A stretch of DNA of 63,573 bases, counting the filler, from Reticulomyxa filosa (Eukaryota > Protista > Foraminifera), in the NCBI GenBank assembly GCA_000512085.1. It is 15 parts of 15 records of this genome, joined end to end, with 100 filler letters (N's around TTAATTAATTAA, not from the genome) between each part and the next. Parts side by side here need not be neighbours in the genome. Positions count along the whole stretch, not along the records: positions 1 to 9,591 come from ASPP01024271.1; 14 more parts are not named here. One strand, 5' to 3'. The position numbers and the translations under genes were made by a program. The notes beneath the pieces were generated by a model. That model was not told the DNA's origin and ran no database searches. It worked only from the letters and a program-made list of their open reading frames with translations. Shown here in pieces: positions 1-9,591 of this stretch; within the stretch, counting starts at the first letter, position 1; every line of letters starts with the position of its first letter.

Positions 1-3000
1 TCAATTTGCACTCTGTCGCCAATATCATATCTTATTTCGTCTCTTTCATCTTCGCTGTCTTCTGATTTTGTTTCAACTTCTGGAACAGGCTCTACTGAAA
101 CCACAGACGATCTTCGTGCAAAGATGCCTCTTCCAATCGGACACTGTTTATGTTTTGTGCTATCATTTGCAGAAATGGTGTTGACATAAACACAATAATA
201 CCTGGAAATAGCGATAGTTATTATAAACACCATCGTGCGCGCCAGGGGTCCATGCGTCTGACGGAAAAAAAAAGAATGTTTGTGCTTAACATTTATAAAT
301 TGAACAAATACAAAAGCAAACCTAATTCGACTCCAATAATTTCTTGATCAGACAAATGATCTGCACCAATATATTTGACCACTCCTGTGCGGTTATTGGT
401 AAGTTTAATCTTATCGCCAAGTTTTAATTGAACTTTGGCTTCTTCCAATTTCTTTTGCTCGGGATCATACTTTTCAATGTCGTCTCGTCTTGTAAATACG
501 CCACGTCCGGGGAATGTCTCGAAAATGACCTCGTTGTTGACAATGCCGTCGTGTGCATCCATGGACCATTCATCCAACTCAATTCCGATCACTTCGCCGC
601 CGGTAAATGCCGGGAATCCGACGTACTTAACAATACCAGTCCTTCCATTTTCTTTGATTTGCACACGATCTCCAGATTTAAAGGGTCGCAACTGGAAGGT
701 CGCATTTACGGTTTTTAAGTCAATCGGTTTAACCAAAGGAATCACAACTTGCGATATCAGTTCTCGTTTCGTGAAATAGCCACGTCCTTCGTTGGCTTCA
801 AAATATTTTCTGTCGCGGATTGTTCCGTTGTGTCCATAAGAGTCCCATGTATCCAACTCCAACCCAATGATTTCGCCTTGCGTGAACGCAGTTTCTCCTA
901 TGTACTTTACCACACCTGTTTTTCCACGGGCCAATTTCACATAATCGCCAATTTTGAATTGAATTTTGGGCAAAGGAGCTTGTGGAGGCGGGGTTCCTTC
1001 TTCCTCGTCGTTCGTCGTTTCTTTTTGCATGCCCTGATTCAAAGTCATACAAACAAATATCAAAATAATAAGCAATAATAATAATAATAAAACAAAAGTA
1101 CAAAAATATTTGTAGCATCACATACCGCATGTCCAAGGTTCTCAAGGATGAGGCTTTCTTTGGCAAAGAATCCACGACCACGGTCACACTAAGATCACCC
1201 ACAGAGCAATTCACGTAAAGTTTGATAAAGAAAAAATATGTAATGTTTACATTGAAAAGTAAAAATAGAGACCAAACCTTGAAATAAGTTTTGCCTCGAA
1301 CAGTTCCATTGGTTGCATTGGGATGCCAACTGTCCAACTCAATGCCGACCAACTTTTCATTGGAAAAGTCGACATTGCCAAAGTATCTGACCACTCCAGT
1401 TTTGTTGCCCAATATTCGAACGCGATCTCCAACATTGACTTGGATCAGATTTTCGACAATGCTCTTTCGATGAGAAGTGCCTTGTATTTGTTCGTTGTTA
1501 TTCTCCACGTCTCCTCCTTGTTCTTCATCATTTTCGTCATTTTCGTCATCGTTTTCATCATTTTCATCATCAACGTCTTCGTCTTCTTCGCTTTCCCTTG
1601 CTTGAGTCTCCTTCAAGTCTTGTATCGATACTTCGTCTTTCGTAAGTTGGGTTTGGGTGTCGTCTTCGTATTGTCTCTCCAACATTATTTCTTGCAAGTT
1701 GGGTGGCGGGGCTTTCTGCAATTGTTCCAATTCCTCTTTATACTTGTCTTTGCGTTGAATTTTTTCGATTTGGCCTTTATGCAATCGATCGCCACCGGCC
1801 AATCGTTGTTCGTATCTTTGGATGTCTCTCAAATGCTTGCGAAGACGCTCGATTCGATTGGCTCGACGATTGGTCTCTTGAATCACTGGATCGACTTTGG
1901 ATAATTCGTCAGTCTTTATTTCTGCAATCGAACGTCGATGAGCAAAGTATCCGTGCCCTTCAGCACATTGGAAGTACTTCTTTCCATCTTTACTTCCGTC
2001 ATGTCCATTAATCCACCATTCGTCCAATTCGATGCCCAGCATTTCCTCTTTGCTGAAATCGGTTTTGCCGACCCATTTGACCACACCTGTGCGCCCACGG
2101 TCCAACTCCACATGATCTCCCACTTTAACTGCTTTGCCTTTTTCATTGGTCCAATCTTTGTCGCCACTTTCATTTGCTTTGTTTTCTTCTTCGCGCGATG
2201 ATCGAATTGTCGAGCCCATATTTTCGACTATCTGATACTTATAGCAAAAGAACCCTCGCATGCTCGGACAGTCAAAGTACTTTGTTCCATTTACGCTGCC
2301 GTTGTTTCCATTGGGTGACCATTGGTCCAACTCAATGCCGACCATTTCTTCTTTCTTGTCAAATGCCACTAGACCCACGAATCTGACAACCTGTCATATA
2401 TGTACACATATATACATATATATAAATATATATGTAAACATAAATGTATATGTATACATATAAATACAAGGTTTTTATGATCTCTTAACTCCGGTACAAC
2501 CATTGTCGATTTTGACACGATCTCCAAGAGCAAATTCAACGCCATTCGGTTGGTCTTGGTCAAAGTCATTTGACAACGGCAACTGCAATGACTCTCTGCG
2601 CGTGAAAATAGCATGTCCAGGTCTACTTTCAAAGTATTTGGTTCCTTGAATAGAGCCATCGTTTGCGTTGGGATCAAAGGCTTCCAATTCCACTCCCAAC
2701 ATCTCCTCCACGTTTTTTCCGTCTTCTCCAACCACTTCGCCTTTCCAAACCACTTTGCCAAGTCCTTGCATAGTCTTGACATTGTCACCAACGTTTACAT
2801 TGCTTTGAGATGTTCCTTTTGACGTATCATTGCGTGTTGGTCGAGTGCGCTTAGTGGTTCCCATGTTCTTTTGTACTTCTTCCTGCAACGCAAAGTATCC
2901 TCGGCCGTTTGGCGTTTTGAAGTACTCTTTCCCATCCAACTCTCCATTGTGGTAGTTGGGATTGCTCTCATCCATCAACAAACCAAGCACGTCATCCGTG

Positions 3001-6000
3001 AGAAACGGCACTTTGCCAATCCATTTCACCACACCAGTGGCTCCACTTTCCAATTGCACTGCGTCGCCAATGCTCACCGGCACCGTCCACTTTTTGGTTC
3101 CCAGATCCATGGTGGCCTTTCTTTCCAACAGCTGGTTGCGCTTTTTAAGATTCATTTCTTTTCTTTCCCTATCTTGAGCTTCAAAGTCAAAATTTCCATT
3201 CTCCAATTCATTCAACTTCTTCAACAGCACCTCTTTGCTGACAATTCTTTGGAGTTGCTTGGGTGTCAAAGTTTCGCCCTTTTCACGACGTGTTTCCAAT
3301 ACTGCAATTTGGTGCAGTTTTCGTTTTGTCTTTTTGATTTCACGACGAGCTCGCAAGCGACTGCTTTGGCTATTTGAGGTTTCGTCTGGCAGCACCAAAT
3401 TCACAATGGATCCCTTGTGAGTAAAATACCCGCGACCAGGCTTTGCCTTGAATAACGCTTGCCTCGTATTTTCCCATCGTGTGCTCCCTCTGTCCATTGG
3501 GACAACTCCAAGCCAACAATTTCTTCTCCTTTGCTAAATTCAGTAACTCCAATAAACTTGACCACTCCAGTCTTGCCTCGGGCCAGTTTCACTTTGTCTC
3601 CAACTGCAAACTTGGGTTTTGGTGGCAACGGTGCCACTTGCTCACTTTCATCAAATTGTCCCAAATTCGCAACTAATCGCTCCAACGTGGTGAAATAGCC
3701 ATGTCCCTCTTTACACTTAAAATATTCCTTGCCGTCGACAGTGCCGCTATAGGCAGAAGGATGCCATTGATCCAACTCCAAGCCAATGCTCAACTGGTCT
3801 CGCGCAAAGTCCGTTTCGCCAACAAAACGCACAATGCCTGTCTTGCCCGTTTTGGTACGTACACGATCGCCGATCAGAGGTGCTCGAGTGAGATGGCCCG
3901 TTTTGGAGTCCATTTCCGGAGGCACTTCCCAGTCGAATATTGGCGCCAAGTTCTCTTCTTTTACTCCCAACAGTTTGTTGTCCTTCTTCTCCTCATGCAA
4001 TCGGACTTTCCATCGCTGCTTTTCGGGCGCGTATCCGAGTATCTTTACAATTTGGCCATTGTATTGAGGGGTCGCCACCAGATTTTTCAACTTCGCATAC
4101 GCGCCATCCTTAATATGCGTCCTGACAACGTTTGCAATTGATTTCCTGCGAGTGAAATAGCCTCTTCCTTTGTTTGCATCAAAGAGTTTCTTCAAGCCAA
4201 GAGTGCCATCTCGTGCATTGGCATCCCATGACTCCAATCTATCACACATTTCCCCACCCCCCCCCCGCCCAAAAAAAAATGGATAATGAAATCATTTTTT
4301 TTAAAAAAACAAAAAAAAAAAAACACAAATAAATAATAAATAAATAAAAACAAAACTCAATTCCAACAATTTCCTCATTTCCAGTTTCTTCTGTGGTACC
4401 AATATAACGGACAACACCGACCTTTCCTTGTGCCAGTTTGACTTTGTCTCCAGGCTTAATATTCGGCGGAGGGTTCTTTTGTTCGTCTTGGGCATTACTA
4501 TCGGAATTTGATTGCAACGAGGCTGGCAGCGTCGAGCCCAGGTTCTCGACCAAATGTGACAACGTGGTGAAGTAGCCTCGTCCATGAGAACACGTAAAAT
4601 ATTGGACACCATTGACAGTCCCATCTCCGGCATTGGGATTCCAACGATCCAATTCCACTCCGATCAAAGTGCCTCTGTTAAAATCGACTTCTCCAATGAA
4701 CTTGACCACTCCCGTTTTGCCGCGAATACTTCGAACGCGGTCTCCCAATTCGGGCATTACTCGTAGTGATTGTGCTCTCTTTTCTTCTTCTTTTCGTAGG
4801 ACAATGGAAATCTCTTCAGGCTTCACGAAAAAGCCTCGTCCTTTGCTTGTGGCAAAGTACGTTTTGCCATTCACGGTCCCGTCGTGGGCATTGTAATACC
4901 AGTCGTCTAATTCCAATCCCACCCATTTCTCGCTGCCTGGGAAATCAGTTCGATCATAGAAGCGAATCAAGCCGCGCATTCCATTTCGAAGCTGCACACG
5001 TTGTCCGATATCTACCTTCATATAGTATTTTTGTTTTTTTTTTTTTTTTCTGCTTCCACTTTTCTTTTCCATTCTTGCTCGTTATCAATCACTTGGGTTA
5101 TGCAATCTGCACGCGCAAACCATCCCATTCCTGCAGATGCCTCAAAGTACGAGTCATCTCGGACTGTTCCATTGTGGCCATTGGGGTCCCATTCATCCAA
5201 ATTCAATCCAACCATTTCGTGCGGTGCAAATTTCACTTTGCCGATGAATGCCACCTTTCCGCTGTATCCATCGTTCGTTATAACGTGATCGTCCTTCTCG
5301 TAAAACACGCCCAGAGACTGGGGATCAAAGTTTTCCAGAGCCAGTGAATCTTGTCGCAAGATCTTCTGAGCGTCATCGTCCTTGATCATGTCCTTCAATG
5401 TTGCAAATGATTGTCTTCGAACAAAGTATCCTGTGCCCGGTTCCGCCTCAAAGTACTTCTTTCCAAATAATGTGCCATCTGTTGCATTGGCACTCCACGA
5501 ATTCAATTGAATGCCTATCATTGGCTCGTCTTTACTAAAATCAGTTTTTCCCACGTACTTCACCACTCCGGATTTGCCTAACATAAGTTGAATTTTGCAT
5601 TGACAATAGTATTACAAAGGAAATATTCAACAAATGAAATCTGCATCACATAATATATATACATATATATATACATATATACATATATATATGTATACCT
5701 CCAACGTTAATTGTTTCACCGACTTTTGGTAGATCAGGAAAAGTTGGCTTCTCTTCCTCTTGCAACTCAATCAATTCAGGTAACTCTTTGAAATCGTCGG
5801 CATCATCTTTGTTCAGGTCATCATCATTTTCTTCGCGAACTGGCTCCAGTTCCATCGACCTTCTTCTTTGGTCATTCTTCACAGGTGTTTTATTGCTATC
5901 CTCTTTTTCCTCGTCAAACAGTCCCACGATGGAGTCGAAAGGCACAAGTAAGCCCCTTCCTTCCGGCGCCACAAAGTATTGGGTTCCATCGACCGTTCCT

Positions 6001-9000
6001 ATGCCATTGGGAGACCAGTTGTCCAACAAAATGCCAAGCATTTCGCGATCATCAAAGCTGACGGAGCCAATAAACATGATTTTGCCAACTTCGCCGCTGT
6101 CCAAAATGACTTTGTCGCCGGTTTTAACTTGTGGAGCCCCGTGATTGACAGGCAAATTAGGTCCATTTAATCCAATGGCAGACTCGCGTTTGACAACATC
6201 GTCAATTTCGATCAAAGGATAGCTTGCATTGAACGCTTCGGTAAGCTCTTTTAATTGCCTTTGAATGGACATTTTCCGTTGCATGAAATGGCCTTGGTTG
6301 CGATTCAACTCCGTTCCTAGATGGTTGTTTTTTTCGAGCTGCTCAATTTTGTATAATCTTTTTTGCAATCCACGCATTTGTCGATATCTTTGCGTTTGGA
6401 TTTTGGCTTGCTCCGTGTCATTTGGTCGTTCGATTAGTTCAATCACGTCGGATCGCTTGGCGAAATAGCCTCTTCCGTTGGTCGTTACAAAGTAGCCCTT
6501 GCCATTGTGTCCGCTTGGATTGGACGAATCCAATTCGACACCAATCATTTCCACCTCTCCGCCAACGGGACCGACATATTTGATCTTGCCAGTTTTGCCA
6601 CGCAGCAATCGCACATGGTCGCCTACTTTCAATTCCAAAGGCTCGTTTTGCAGACTGGAATAGCGCTCGTCGTAATACTTTCCAAGGTTTTCACTCAAAT
6701 CGGAGAGTCTGACAATTCGTTTGCTGCCATCAACACCAATGGAAGAGTCCAACAAGACAATTTGGATCTCTTGTTGACTGATCGGAGTTGTCGCCGTCAA
6801 AGGTTTTTCAATACGTTGAACAATGCCTTCTTCGCCCGATCTCAATCGCACTCGATCTCCCTTGTCGGGAAGCACTTTCAAATTGGACAAATATTCCAAC
6901 TTGGGTGGGAGCACTTGCATAATCGATTGTCGTCGTGTGAACAAGCCTCTGCCCATCTTTGTTTTGAACAACGACTTGCCTTTGAACTTCCCATCGTTGG
7001 CATTGGGATCCCAAGTATCCAACTCGACTCCGATAACTGGTTCGGTTTCTTCCTCGCCTGCGTCACTACCGACATATTTCACCACTCCAGTTCCACCTTC
7101 CGCCATTTGAATGCGATCGCCCACTTTGAACTTGACTCCCTCATTTCTCGTGGTGTCCATGAGCACTACACGATCCAAAGGCGTATTCACAATGGAGCCC
7201 AGATTTTCCGTCAAATACTTTTGCTTGGTAAAAAACCCACGCTGAGGCTTTGTTCGAAAGTATTGCTTGTTTTTCACTGTCCCGTCGGTCGCATTGGGAG
7301 AAAAATCGTCCAACACGAGGCCGATCCACGTCCCTTCTGCAAAGTCGACTGACCCAATGAATTGAATCACTCCGGTTTGGCCATCAAATACTCGGACGCG
7401 GTCTTTGATCACTGGCATTTGTTTCAGGTTGGTCTTTGGCTCGGTCCAGTCTTCCACGAGTTTATTTATGTCATTATTCTTTGTTGTTTCCGATTCTTTC
7501 AGGGCTTTGATTTCGGCCTCTGTCAATACCTTTTCAATATCTTTGCGAGAGCAAAAGTACGAACGTCCTTGTGGACATTTGAAATATTCCTTATTGCTTA
7601 CTGTCCCATCACTTCCATTGGGCCACCATTGTTTCAATTCCAATCCAATCACTTCGCCATCGCTAAAGTGCTCGAACCCCATAAACATGATTGTGCCAAT
7701 GCCATAGTATTTCGTCTTTACCACCTGTCCTCGACCCAAGTCGCCGTCGTAAGGCTTTGGTGGTGTTTGGTTTTTCTCGATCACGTTTGTGCTTCCAAGA
7801 TTTTCCACCACTTGAGAGACGTCAATGAAGGCACCCTTGTTGGCATTGACGCGGAAGTATTCCTTTCCTTTAAACGTGCCCGAAGTGGCTTTGGGGTCCC
7901 ATTCATCCAACTCCAATCCAATGTATTGTTTCTTCGCGTCTTCCATTCCAGCCAATGGGCCCACGTAACGCACCATACCTGTTCGACCGCCTTGGATGCG
8001 GACGCGATCGTCGACATGGACAACAATGTTCTCTCCATTAACCAAAAAGTCTGTTGCATTGCCGGCATTCGTTCCATATTCCATCAGCTGGCGCACAAAC
8101 ACTTTTTTGATCTCTTTGGCGCGTACAAAAATACCAAAGCCATCTTTCGTGGCAAATTTACCTTTGCCGTCGTGTCCCTGTGAAGAAATCTTGTCCAATT
8201 CGATACCAATGGCTTCGCCTCCACTTGCAGCTTCCACTGGTGCGATATATCGAACAGTCCCTTTATTATTATTATTATTATTTATTAAATGAATAATCTC
8301 TTTCTTTCATATTACACTCAAACAAAATAAAATAAAATAAATACCAGTTCTAGATCGGTCTAATTCAACACGATCGCCGACTTGTAACTTTTCAATCATC
8401 TTTTGCAACTCTTGCTCTCGTTGTGTCTCTTTTTCCTTTTCTTCCAACATTTTGATGCGCTCTTCCAATCCTAACTTTTTTCCCGTTCTTACGTCACGCT
8501 CATCACTACTCATCAAATCCTTCAATTCCAAATGTTTCAACGTGTCCGGGATCTTCAACACTCGTATCACACTATCTTGCTTCACAAATATGCCACGCCC
8601 ATTCTTGCAAGTGAAATATTTCTTGCCATTTCTGGACCCGTCGTTTCCATTCACATCCCATTGATCCAGCTCGACGCCGAGAACTTCTTCGCCTTTGCTA
8701 AAGTCCGTTACTCCAATGTATCGAACAAACTATTCATTTGCATTGATTCAAGGGTTATGTGATATGTACAAATGTGATTGGTGACAGTTTCAATCCAAGT
8801 TGTCCATACATATATAAATATGTGTATGTACGTATACATATATATGTATATATGCACATGAAATATATATGTTTATAACAAACAATAAAAAAACGTAACT
8901 CCAGTTTGTCCACTTGTTAGTGTGACATAACTATCGACATCAATTTTGATATCTTCTTCCTCCTCTTCTTCAATAGTTTCCATTTGTCCGTCATTGCCAT

Positions 9001-9501
9001 TGTCGTTGTAGATATCTTCTTCAATCAGTTTGTCTATTTCGATGACAGTTTTTTGGCGATACAAATCAGCGTCTTCACGGATATCGTTTTTGTTTTCAAA
9101 GATTTGTTCGGTGATTGGCAATGAATCCACAGCAATGATAGCTGATCTTCGTACAAAGATACCTCTCCCGTGATCGGTACTGAAATAACGCACGTTTCCA
9201 AAGGACCCATCGTTGCCTGTCGGTAATTTGGCATCGAGTTCGATCCCATACATTTCGCCCACCGCAAAGTCTGTGCTTCCTACATACCGAACAACACCGG
9301 TGCGATTGTTGACCAATGTCACTCGATCCCCGCATTGTACTGCTTGTTGGTCCTGCGCTGGTGGCTCCATTTCCAAGTCCTCTGGAATCATCTCGGGTTG
9401 TTTTCCGTTTTCTTTTTCCATTTCCGCGCGTGTCTTCACCATCATATCCACGTCGTTCACACGAGCAAAATACGAGTGTCCGGGTTTGCATTCAAAATAT
9501 C
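1..9501 (-). CDS. Giant multi-CAP-Gly-domain protein, internal fragment of about 10 exons, open at both ends
   Basis: Successive minus-strand ORFs (8873-9460, 8307-8654, 5646-8237, 5018-5584, 4242-5072, 3401-4249, 2475-3497, 798-2378, 293-1075) join through in-phase GT-AG introns (approx. 8730-8899, 8261-8344, 4239-4356, 2391-2489, 1189-1277, 258-321, 145-201). They repeat the pattern GDRV..x..G.TGVVKYIG..DF..G..IG.ELD.W..N.HDG...G..YF....GRG.F. I count 24 clear domains, 1 degenerate and 2 partial. There are two apparent 1-nt homopolymer frameshifts (~3452, ~5040). Confidence 0.9.
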
Positions 9502-9591
9502 TTTGAGTATATCACACAATTGGTTTTTTTTTTTTTTGACATAGTTTTAGTTGATCGCAAAATTGGAGGGACGAGAAAATAGATAAAAAAA

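Follow-up and report, generated by a model that had tools for sequence, protein, structure and literature searches.

The window analysed here consists of 63,573 nucleotides (nt), filler included, of DNA from the naked, amoeboid freshwater foraminiferan Reticulomyxa filosa (assembly GCA_000512085.1), in which parts of 15 records are joined end to end. The first part, positions 1 to 9,591 (ASPP01024271.1, here contig G000:C24271), very likely harbors the central portion of one large, selected, intron-containing gene, which encodes a record-length array of domains with the CAP-Gly fold and is a member of a foraminiferan family.

Gene structure and domain content

On the minus strand of positions 1-9591, 10 exons and nine short introns were recognized, yielding about 2,868 codons without a single in-frame stop. 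A preliminary description of this DNA, made from the sequence alone, had proposed one continuous minus-strand coding sequence of more than 2,800 amino acids (aa) running off both ends, and both claims were confirmed: the reading is broken only by two 1-nt deletions, and CAP-Gly domains are cut at 9500-9461 and 30-1. Since the contig is represented completely, both cut domains mark assembly ends; the draft assembly is fragmented, 101.9 Mb being distributed over 50,809 contigs. The exons sum up to 8,605 nt and form stop-free stretches of 1,362, 489, and 1,015 aa, with 16 to 69 stops in each of the other frames. All nine introns, 58 to 170 nt in size, have GT..AG borders. Their GC content is 13-31% versus 45% for the exons, and several contain AT-rich microsatellites. 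Single exons or open reading frames (ORFs) were used for searches and folding, and a local check of the joined reading covered stops and whether the domains were complete.

Each of the nine large ORFs on the minus strand matched the Pfam family CAP_GLY (PF01302, curated cut-off 26.5 bits); E-values lie between 1.4e-7 and 3.8e-76, scores between 31.8 and 251.4 bits. A hidden Markov model built from the repeats of the window gave significant matches on the minus strand only, from position 9500 down to base 1. In total, 24 complete domains were counted (16 uninterrupted, seven split by introns, one crossed by a 1-nt frameshift), along with one degenerate unit and two domains cut by the contig ends, the same numbers as given in the preliminary description, where a foraminiferan host had, correctly, been considered as well. 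With the profile made from the window repeats the 24 domains score 47.9-106.6 bits, and each of the seven intron-split domains is a full-length CAP-Gly domain once spliced (47.9-93.8 bits). The distance from one domain start to the next has a median of 100 residues and ranges from 85 to 230. Positions of exons, domains, and linkers are listed in Table 1.

When the profile of the 16 uninterrupted domains was compared with solved structures, the CAP-Gly domains of p150Glued, CLIP-170, CLIP-115, CLIPR-59, KIF13B, CEP350, TBCB, and CYLD were retrieved, the best E-value being 5e-18. An AlphaFold2 model of one domain, D13, reached a predicted local distance difference test score (pLDDT) of 91.4. The first 45 Foldseek matches of this model were all CAP-Gly structures, the best with a template modelling (TM) score of 0.91 and a root mean square deviation of 1.0 A (2qk0, 2hqh, 3e2u), and the assignment of the repeats to CAP-Gly thus stands for family (E-values down to 3.8e-76) as well as fold (TM 0.91). 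A model of four consecutive domains (D4-D7) showed folded beta-domains with pLDDT of about 80-90 connected by linkers below 50 (predicted TM score 0.53), an arrangement predicted to resemble beads on a flexible string.

Within the repeats, introns sit at the same three positions of different CAP-Gly domains despite a repeat identity of about 40%: after a conserved TG (8730-8899, 8261-8344, 2391-2489), in the ELD strand (4239-4356, 258-321), and before the Cys/Gly-Arg-Gly turn (1189-1277, 144-201). These introns either existed before the domains were duplicated or arose by parallel gain. The three longest linkers share a motif of about 45 residues (a basic run, L..I..LE, G..L...Q, and ...EL..L), for which no Pfam match was obtained; it may mark the boundary of a super-repeat or serve as a second binding site. 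The longest linker also contains, at 1521-1572, a 9/21-nt periodic repeat encoding an acidic run of Asp, Glu, and Asn, the length of which differs from that of a paralogue by two 3-nt indels. The small module in the D14/D15 linker had no Pfam match either; its nearest ESM-Atlas clusters are unnamed hypothetical proteins of protists (diatoms), scoring 0.92-0.94 with recognition below the usual mark.

Table 1. Features of the CAP-Gly array gene on positions 1-9591 of the window. All features are on the minus strand and are given in the order of transcription within each group. Paralogue: contig C27642.
Position	Feature	Score or spacing
9501..9591	3' end of upstream intron, T/A-rich with AG at its end; gene runs 5' off the contig	
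8900..9500	Exon 1, begins within a CAP-Gly domain	
8345..8729	Exon 2	
5699..8260	Exon 3, 2,562 nt; six complete CAP-Gly domains and the degenerate unit	
4357..5577	Exon 4; 1-nt deletion in A-run near 5038	
2490..4238	Exon 5; 1-nt deletion near 3453	
1278..2390	Exon 6	
1126..1188	Exon 7, 63-nt mini-exon completing D21; absent from the GenBank model of the paralogue	
322..1033	Exon 8; matches Nonionella stella transcript protein P0053 at 57% identity (232 aa)	
202..257	Exon 9	
1..143	Exon 10, cut at contig end; carried on by contig C7479 via exact 24-nt overlap	
9461..9500	CAP-Gly, C-terminal piece; start off the contig	
9140..9337	CAP-Gly D1	88.6 bits
8580..8941	CAP-Gly D2, split by intron 8730-8899	83.1 bits (spliced)
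8121..8385	CAP-Gly D3, split by intron 8261-8344, divergent	47.9 bits
7815..8018	CAP-Gly D4	
7539..7736	CAP-Gly D5	
7215..7412	CAP-Gly D6, canonical pocket Trp kept	
6924..7127	CAP-Gly D7	
6681..6863	Degenerate CAP-Gly-like unit, matching just ~18 positions at the start of the profile; approximate coordinates	6 bits
6447..6629	CAP-Gly D8	
5931..6125	CAP-Gly D9	
5417..5727	CAP-Gly D10, split by intron 5578-5698	72.5 bits
5102..5299	CAP-Gly D11	
4812..5012	CAP-Gly D12, canonical pocket Trp kept	
4554..4751	CAP-Gly D13, structure modelled	pLDDT 91.4
4148..4457	CAP-Gly D14, split by intron 4239-4356	
3677..3877	CAP-Gly D15	
3417..3607	CAP-Gly D16, crossed by 1-nt deletion near 3453	
2877..3074	CAP-Gly D17	
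2589..2795	CAP-Gly D18	
2244..2531	CAP-Gly D19, split by intron 2391-2489	89.2 bits
1929..2126	CAP-Gly D20	106.6 bits
1159..1436	CAP-Gly D21, split by intron 1189-1277	93.8 bits
758..955	CAP-Gly D22	
479..679	CAP-Gly D23	
114..424	CAP-Gly D24, split by introns 258-321 and 144-201	81.1 bits
1..30	Next CAP-Gly domain, first residues; completed on contig C7479	
6126..6446	Long linker D8/D9, ~45-aa basic helical motif	168 aa
3869..4147	Linker D14/D15, 93 aa, with small unnamed module	
3075..3416	Long linker D16/D17, second copy of basic helical motif	177 aa
1437..1928	Longest linker D20/D21, third copy of helical motif and acidic D/E/N run (1521-1572)	230 aa
5034..5050	A-run in D11/D12 linker, 1 nt fewer than paralogue, frame 2 to frame 1; gap aligned at 5038, run edges approximate	
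3451..3455	Second 1-nt deletion versus paralogue (near 3453); TT here, TTT in paralogue	

Continuation, paralogues and relatives

Downstream of contig C24271, the reading could be followed over two further contigs. The first 24 nt of contig C7479 overlap exactly with window bases 24-1, including two bases that differ in the paralogue, and 447 nt at its other end match the end of contig C19725 at 100% identity. Together they add three CAP-Gly units: two introns interrupt one of them, another is half-degenerate, and the third is canonical. The last CAP-Gly domain of the chain (on C7479) is the canonical one, with GKHDG and the Trp kept (76.9 bits). Behind it come a Cys-rich finger and an acidic linker, then EF-hand-like modules and RPEL-like motifs, and finally a long helical tail, rich in K/E, that ends at a stop; from ORF reading, the coiled-coil C-terminus comprises about 450 residues. 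Judged by eye, the Cys-rich region on C7479 is ZZ-like, but Pfam gave only a weak DnaJ-finger match for it. The RPEL-like motifs and the K/E-rich helical region, on the minus strand of C19725 (960-1808, 484-999), come after the EF-hand-like modules; a frame change was noted in an A-rich stretch near 2966-3005 of the reverse complement. Both regions are probably part of the same gene, because they are collinear with the C-terminus of the Nonionella protein P0053 described below.

The full protein is estimated at roughly 4,000 aa, its N-terminus not being included in the contigs joined so far. A DNA search with the 5' exon detected paralogues only and no upstream contig of the gene, and no Pfam matches were obtained in the 6.9 kb upstream on the paralogous contig C2292. 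Since the paralogous array on contig C5602 contains two or more additional domains 5' of the piece matching window position 9500, the array of the window gene probably extends further in the 5' direction.

The closest paralogue is located on contig C27642 (12,090 bp), which is collinear with the window gene over 8.8 kb at 86.6% nucleotide and about 90% amino acid identity. Exons are 85-95% identical, introns 33-86%. Over 2,758 codons, nonsynonymous (dN) and synonymous (dS) divergence were 0.058 and 0.479, respectively (dN/dS 0.12), with no stops in either copy, values that indicate purifying selection. In GenBank, C27642 carries two models, RFI_31450 (2,604 aa, 23 CAP-Gly repeats) and RFI_31451 (five repeats and an EF-hand), deposited as hypothetical proteins (ETO05945.1 and ETO05946-like). 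They represent the collinear paralogue of the window gene, but belong to a separate locus (dS 0.48) and are entered as two partial, unnamed, and undescribed proteins. In this annotation, one gene is split within a CAP-Gly domain, the 63-nt exon is missed, and an intron is translated at the start of both models. GenBank models of the CAP-Gly array family are thus fragmented and split within domains, and re-annotation is needed. Under the length limits and clustering of the protein searches, only paralogues were retrieved, and no GenBank model for the contig of the window gene.

Further arrays covering whole contigs are present on C5602 (about 22 domains), C5087, and C3111. Pairwise identity of the domains within the window is only 25-59% (mean 39%), and each of them has a positional counterpart at 52-86% in other R. 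filosa paralogues, with the order conserved. Because counterparts at the same position are so much closer than neighbors in the same array, the array is old and position-specific, with beads that are individually conserved, and the family expanded as entire arrays were duplicated. In the genome as a whole, 564 CAP-Gly candidates were seen; scores were obtained for 150 of them, every one above the Pfam cut-off and the weakest with 52.7 bits. Ordinary GKNDG-type loci with one or two CAP-Gly domains are also present in R. filosa.

Among 1.84 billion representative proteins searched with the profile, RFI_31450 ranked first with 23 repeats, followed by proteins with 14, 13, 10, and 8; this search is a survey rather than a census, as cluster representatives can be shorter than their members. 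The extreme architecture suggested previously, for which proteins with more than five CAP-Gly domains were to be sought, is therefore borne out by the paralogue topping this survey. The 14-repeat protein, from Tara data, is of the same subtype as the window array. Long tandem arrays are also specified by P0184 and P0061, on ENA metagenome contigs of 170-254 kb from an uncharacterised eukaryote. They differ in consisting of 7-14 near-identical 82-aa units that are more canonical and retain the Trp, not of old, individually conserved beads; the units being almost identical, these arrays are recent amplifications. Other architectures seen in environmental data were five CAP-Gly domains with a PARP catalytic domain (P0068, JGI) and five with ankyrin repeats, similar to CLIP3/4 (P0059, ENA).

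Relatives were detected in other foraminifera. Protein P0053 of Nonionella stella (2,194 aa), deduced from one transcript, contains six CAP-Gly domains, an EF-hand, and RPEL. It is collinear with window positions 1021-326 (232 aa, 57% identity), and the collinearity extends through both continuation contigs up to a shared C-terminus. For P0057 of Bolivina argentea, high-scoring segment pairs break exactly at the window intron 4356-4239 within D14. The gene can thus be placed by sequence in a foraminiferan CAP-Gly array family with several paralogues in R. filosa and relatives in Nonionella, Bolivina, and marine plankton. In the literature searched, which did not cover the R. filosa genome paper (Curr Biol 2014), no publication on CAP-Gly together with Reticulomyxa or foraminifera, on CAP-Gly arrays, or on CAP-Gly with RPEL was found. 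Known are the CAP-Gly fold and module, and a near-copy of the gene is present in GenBank/UniProt under automatic names; a description of the array was not found in that literature.

Proposed function and alternative explanations

CAP-Gly domains bind EEY/F-type C-terminal tails of alpha-tubulin, EB, or CLIP. Binding to tyrosinated alpha-tubulin tails is established, and a dimeric construct with four CAP-Gly domains decorates such tails and serves as a tail sensor (bioRxiv 10.1101/2025.09.23.678010). Tubulin is strongly expanded in R. filosa, with 126 matches to the C-domain (Tubulin_C) in the genome. Many copies are divergent and alpha-like with long acidic tails; several hold stops and are probably pseudogenes. 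Of roughly two dozen tubulin C-termini read, at least seven have acidic tails ending in Y, F, or W, all of them belonging to divergent alpha-like paralogues. Judged by composition, these tails appear to be the chemical type of a CAP-Gly ligand. A complex prediction with one array domain and the last 45 residues of an aromatic-ended alpha-like tubulin gave no answer (score 0.00) and speaks neither for nor against binding.

A mechanism based on avidity can be proposed. The chain would be dimerised by its coiled coil, as in CLIP-170 and p150Glued, and each CAP-Gly bead would bind weakly to the acidic, aromatic-ended C-terminal tail of an alpha- or alpha-like tubulin. Tens of beads on flexible linkers could then result in very high avidity, and the protein may coat, bundle, or cross-link microtubules, or gather many tubulin subunits for fast assembly. 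RPEL-repeat proteins are G-actin binders of the MRTF/Phactr type, and the EF-hand-like and RPEL-like parts might bring in calcium and G-actin as inputs. The analysis established the structure of the gene, the identity and fold of its domains, the selection acting on it, its family, and its collinearity with a foraminiferan transcript; every binding step and the cellular role are inferred. The mechanism by itself is plausible and, in our view, just on the favorable side of an even balance; as an account of the whole, the central 8.6 kb coding part of one very large CAP-Gly array gene combined with this mechanism is the best explanation and a reasonably probable one. A role as a ruler is possible, without specific support.

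Several observations weigh against this explanation. Two 1-nt frameshifts are present in the window, each a single-base deletion relative to the paralogue on C27642, and transcript-level support comes from the relatives in Nonionella and Bolivina only, not from R. filosa itself. EF-hand and RPEL matches on the continuation contigs remain below the Pfam cut-offs: RPEL (PF02755, cut-off 23 bits) scored 21.0-21.8 bits, compared with 34.6 bits in the collinear Nonionella protein, and EF-hand (PF13405/PF13499) 18.6-21.9 bits, compared with 30.6 bits in the paralogous protein P0032 (cut-off 25) and 25.8 bits in the Nonionella protein. The ligands are affected as well. In the predicted gene model, the ordinary alpha-tubulin, read to the first stop, ends with ...MEV, and the EB1 homologue (C18771, the single match genome-wide), modelled with one splice, has a non-aromatic end that is not of the EEY/F type; therefore, the usual ligands cannot simply be assumed. 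Finally, the array domains lack the GKNDG signature and, compared with p150Glued, have PN[GA]xDG with one extra loop residue instead; only the last domain, on C7479, has GKHDG. The position of p150 Lys68 is occupied by Asn in 38 and by Lys in 11 of 69 domains, that of Asn69 by Gly or Ala in 64. The pocket residue W57 is aliphatic in most array domains, Trp being kept in five of 69, and a new conserved Trp is found at the position of p150 A65 in 56. Other p150 pocket residues are kept: F52 in 45, Y78 in 55, F79 in 67, and F88 in 63 of the 69 domains.

The PN[GA]xDG loop is also found in multi-CAP-Gly proteins of N. stella and B. argentea and on contigs from the Tara Oceans metagenome and a JGI metatranscriptome. 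The array domains are a foraminiferan CAP-Gly subtype, a new one defined by the altered loop. As GKNDG is replaced and the pocket Trp has moved, binding of tubulin tails by these domains can only be inferred. The same gene could instead encode beads with a changed ligand, not tubulin or EB tails but, for example, other C-terminal motifs or proline-rich or ubiquitin-like partners, and the scaffold would then not act primarily on microtubules. CYLD CAP-Gly domains bind proline-rich or ubiquitin-like partners, and CYLD CAP-Gly3 bound to ubiquitin (7owc) was among the structural neighbors of the model; the canonical GKNDG-type proteins of the same genome may do the canonical job, and the ends of alpha-tubulin and EB1 as read would fit a changed ligand, too. 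However, the remaining pocket residues are retained at the frequencies given above, the fold departs from that of tail-binding CAP-Gly domains by 1 A at most, the final CAP-Gly domain on the chain is of the canonical kind, and many alpha-like tubulins offer acidic, aromatic-ended tails. We therefore regard a changed ligand as fairly unlikely, though as an alternative to be taken seriously.

The frameshifts could indicate that the window copy is a recently inactivated duplicate, the gene on C27642 alone being functional, and duplicated copies are indeed abundant in the R. filosa genome. Against such a pseudogene stand the absence of stops in 2,868 codons and the dN/dS of 0.12 at a dS of 0.48. 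Moreover, both lesions are located in short base runs (the A-run and TT/TTT), typical places for sequencing errors, and the paralogue has a 1-nt deletion of its own elsewhere, within D11 at a place matching window position 5150, pointing to indel noise at the level of the assembly. Apart from these three deletions, all exonic indels between the two copies are multiples of three. Inactivation is thus improbable, and the three deletions are probable indel errors of the draft assembly.

That several shorter CAP-Gly genes lie head to tail, or that the contig was misassembled from repeated domains, is very improbable: the paralogous contig is modelled in GenBank as two proteins and foreign transcripts provide the support at that level, but these foraminiferan transcripts span predicted junctions, no in-frame stop, start context, or non-coding gap occurs across the reading, seven introns lie within domains that are each completed by splicing, the GenBank split falls within a CAP-Gly domain at the missed 63-nt exon, and domains just 25-59% identical recur collinearly over 8.8 kb on an independently assembled contig. 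At the DNA level, tandem repeats on positions 1-9591 were restricted to intron microsatellites and the periodic run at 1521-1572. An origin from DNA-level repeats or misassembly was rejected for the lack of such repeats beyond intron microsatellites, and a multiple-gene reading for the continuous stop-free frame with split domains restored on splicing. The domain order is not an assembly artefact.

Within the avidity mechanism, which remains our preferred explanation, a more specific version can be imagined. The array-type bead, with its relocated Trp and PN[GA]xDG, might have co-evolved with the divergent alpha-like tubulins whose tails end in Y, F, or W, and the dimeric chain could be a clamp or template moving tubulin into and out of foraminiferan-specific polymers (bundles, helical filaments), controlled by calcium and coupled to actin via RPEL. 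This version is speculative and unlikely as it stands; if true, it would explain the exceptionally fast assembly and disassembly of microtubules in reticulopodia.

Comparison with known microtubule-binding proteins

In classical work on Reticulomyxa, extremely fast growth, shrinkage, and sliding of microtubules have been observed. The protein described here is a strong and concrete candidate organiser of these dynamic microtubules, by which foraminifera may arrange and remodel such networks, and it shows, as a natural experiment, how far the multivalency of a weak tail-binding module can be driven. To our knowledge, studied proteins carry one to three CAP-Gly copies, and the R. filosa array has about ten times more than any of them.

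The overall layout is most reminiscent of CLIP-170 and CLIP-115, in which N-terminal CAP-Gly domains likewise sit on flexible linkers ahead of a long coiled coil at the C-terminus; structurally, a domain of the array was closest to CAP-Gly1 of CLIP-170 (2qk0, TM 0.91). However, CLIPs have two CAP-Gly domains, whereas the R. filosa protein has about 27 or more, those of the array type without GKNDG and the canonical Trp. The CLIP-170 family is further characterized by CCHC zinc knuckles and an ETF/EEY end; Pfam detected no zinc-knuckle match in the continuation, the C-terminal residue of the chain is non-aromatic, and the Cys-rich finger and the EF-hand-like and RPEL-like parts are additional. 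With at least 27 CAP-Gly domains, a coiled-coil-like tail, no zinc-knuckle match, and a non-aromatic end, the chain was not assigned to the CLIP-170 family. In p150Glued (dynactin subunit 1), the solved structure that the domain profile matched best by sequence (E 5e-18), CAP-Gly is also combined with a coiled coil in a dimer, but the domain is single and has GKNDG, and no dynactin-specific regions were detected by Pfam on positions 1-9591. TOG-domain arrays of XMAP215/Stu2 and repeat MAPs (tau/MAP2, nebulin-like rulers) resemble the proposed array in presenting several weak filament- or tubulin-binding modules on one flexible chain, with avidity or templating as the outcome. This is a functional analogy only: the folds are unrelated, and polymerase or ruler activity is without evidence for the R. 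filosa chain.

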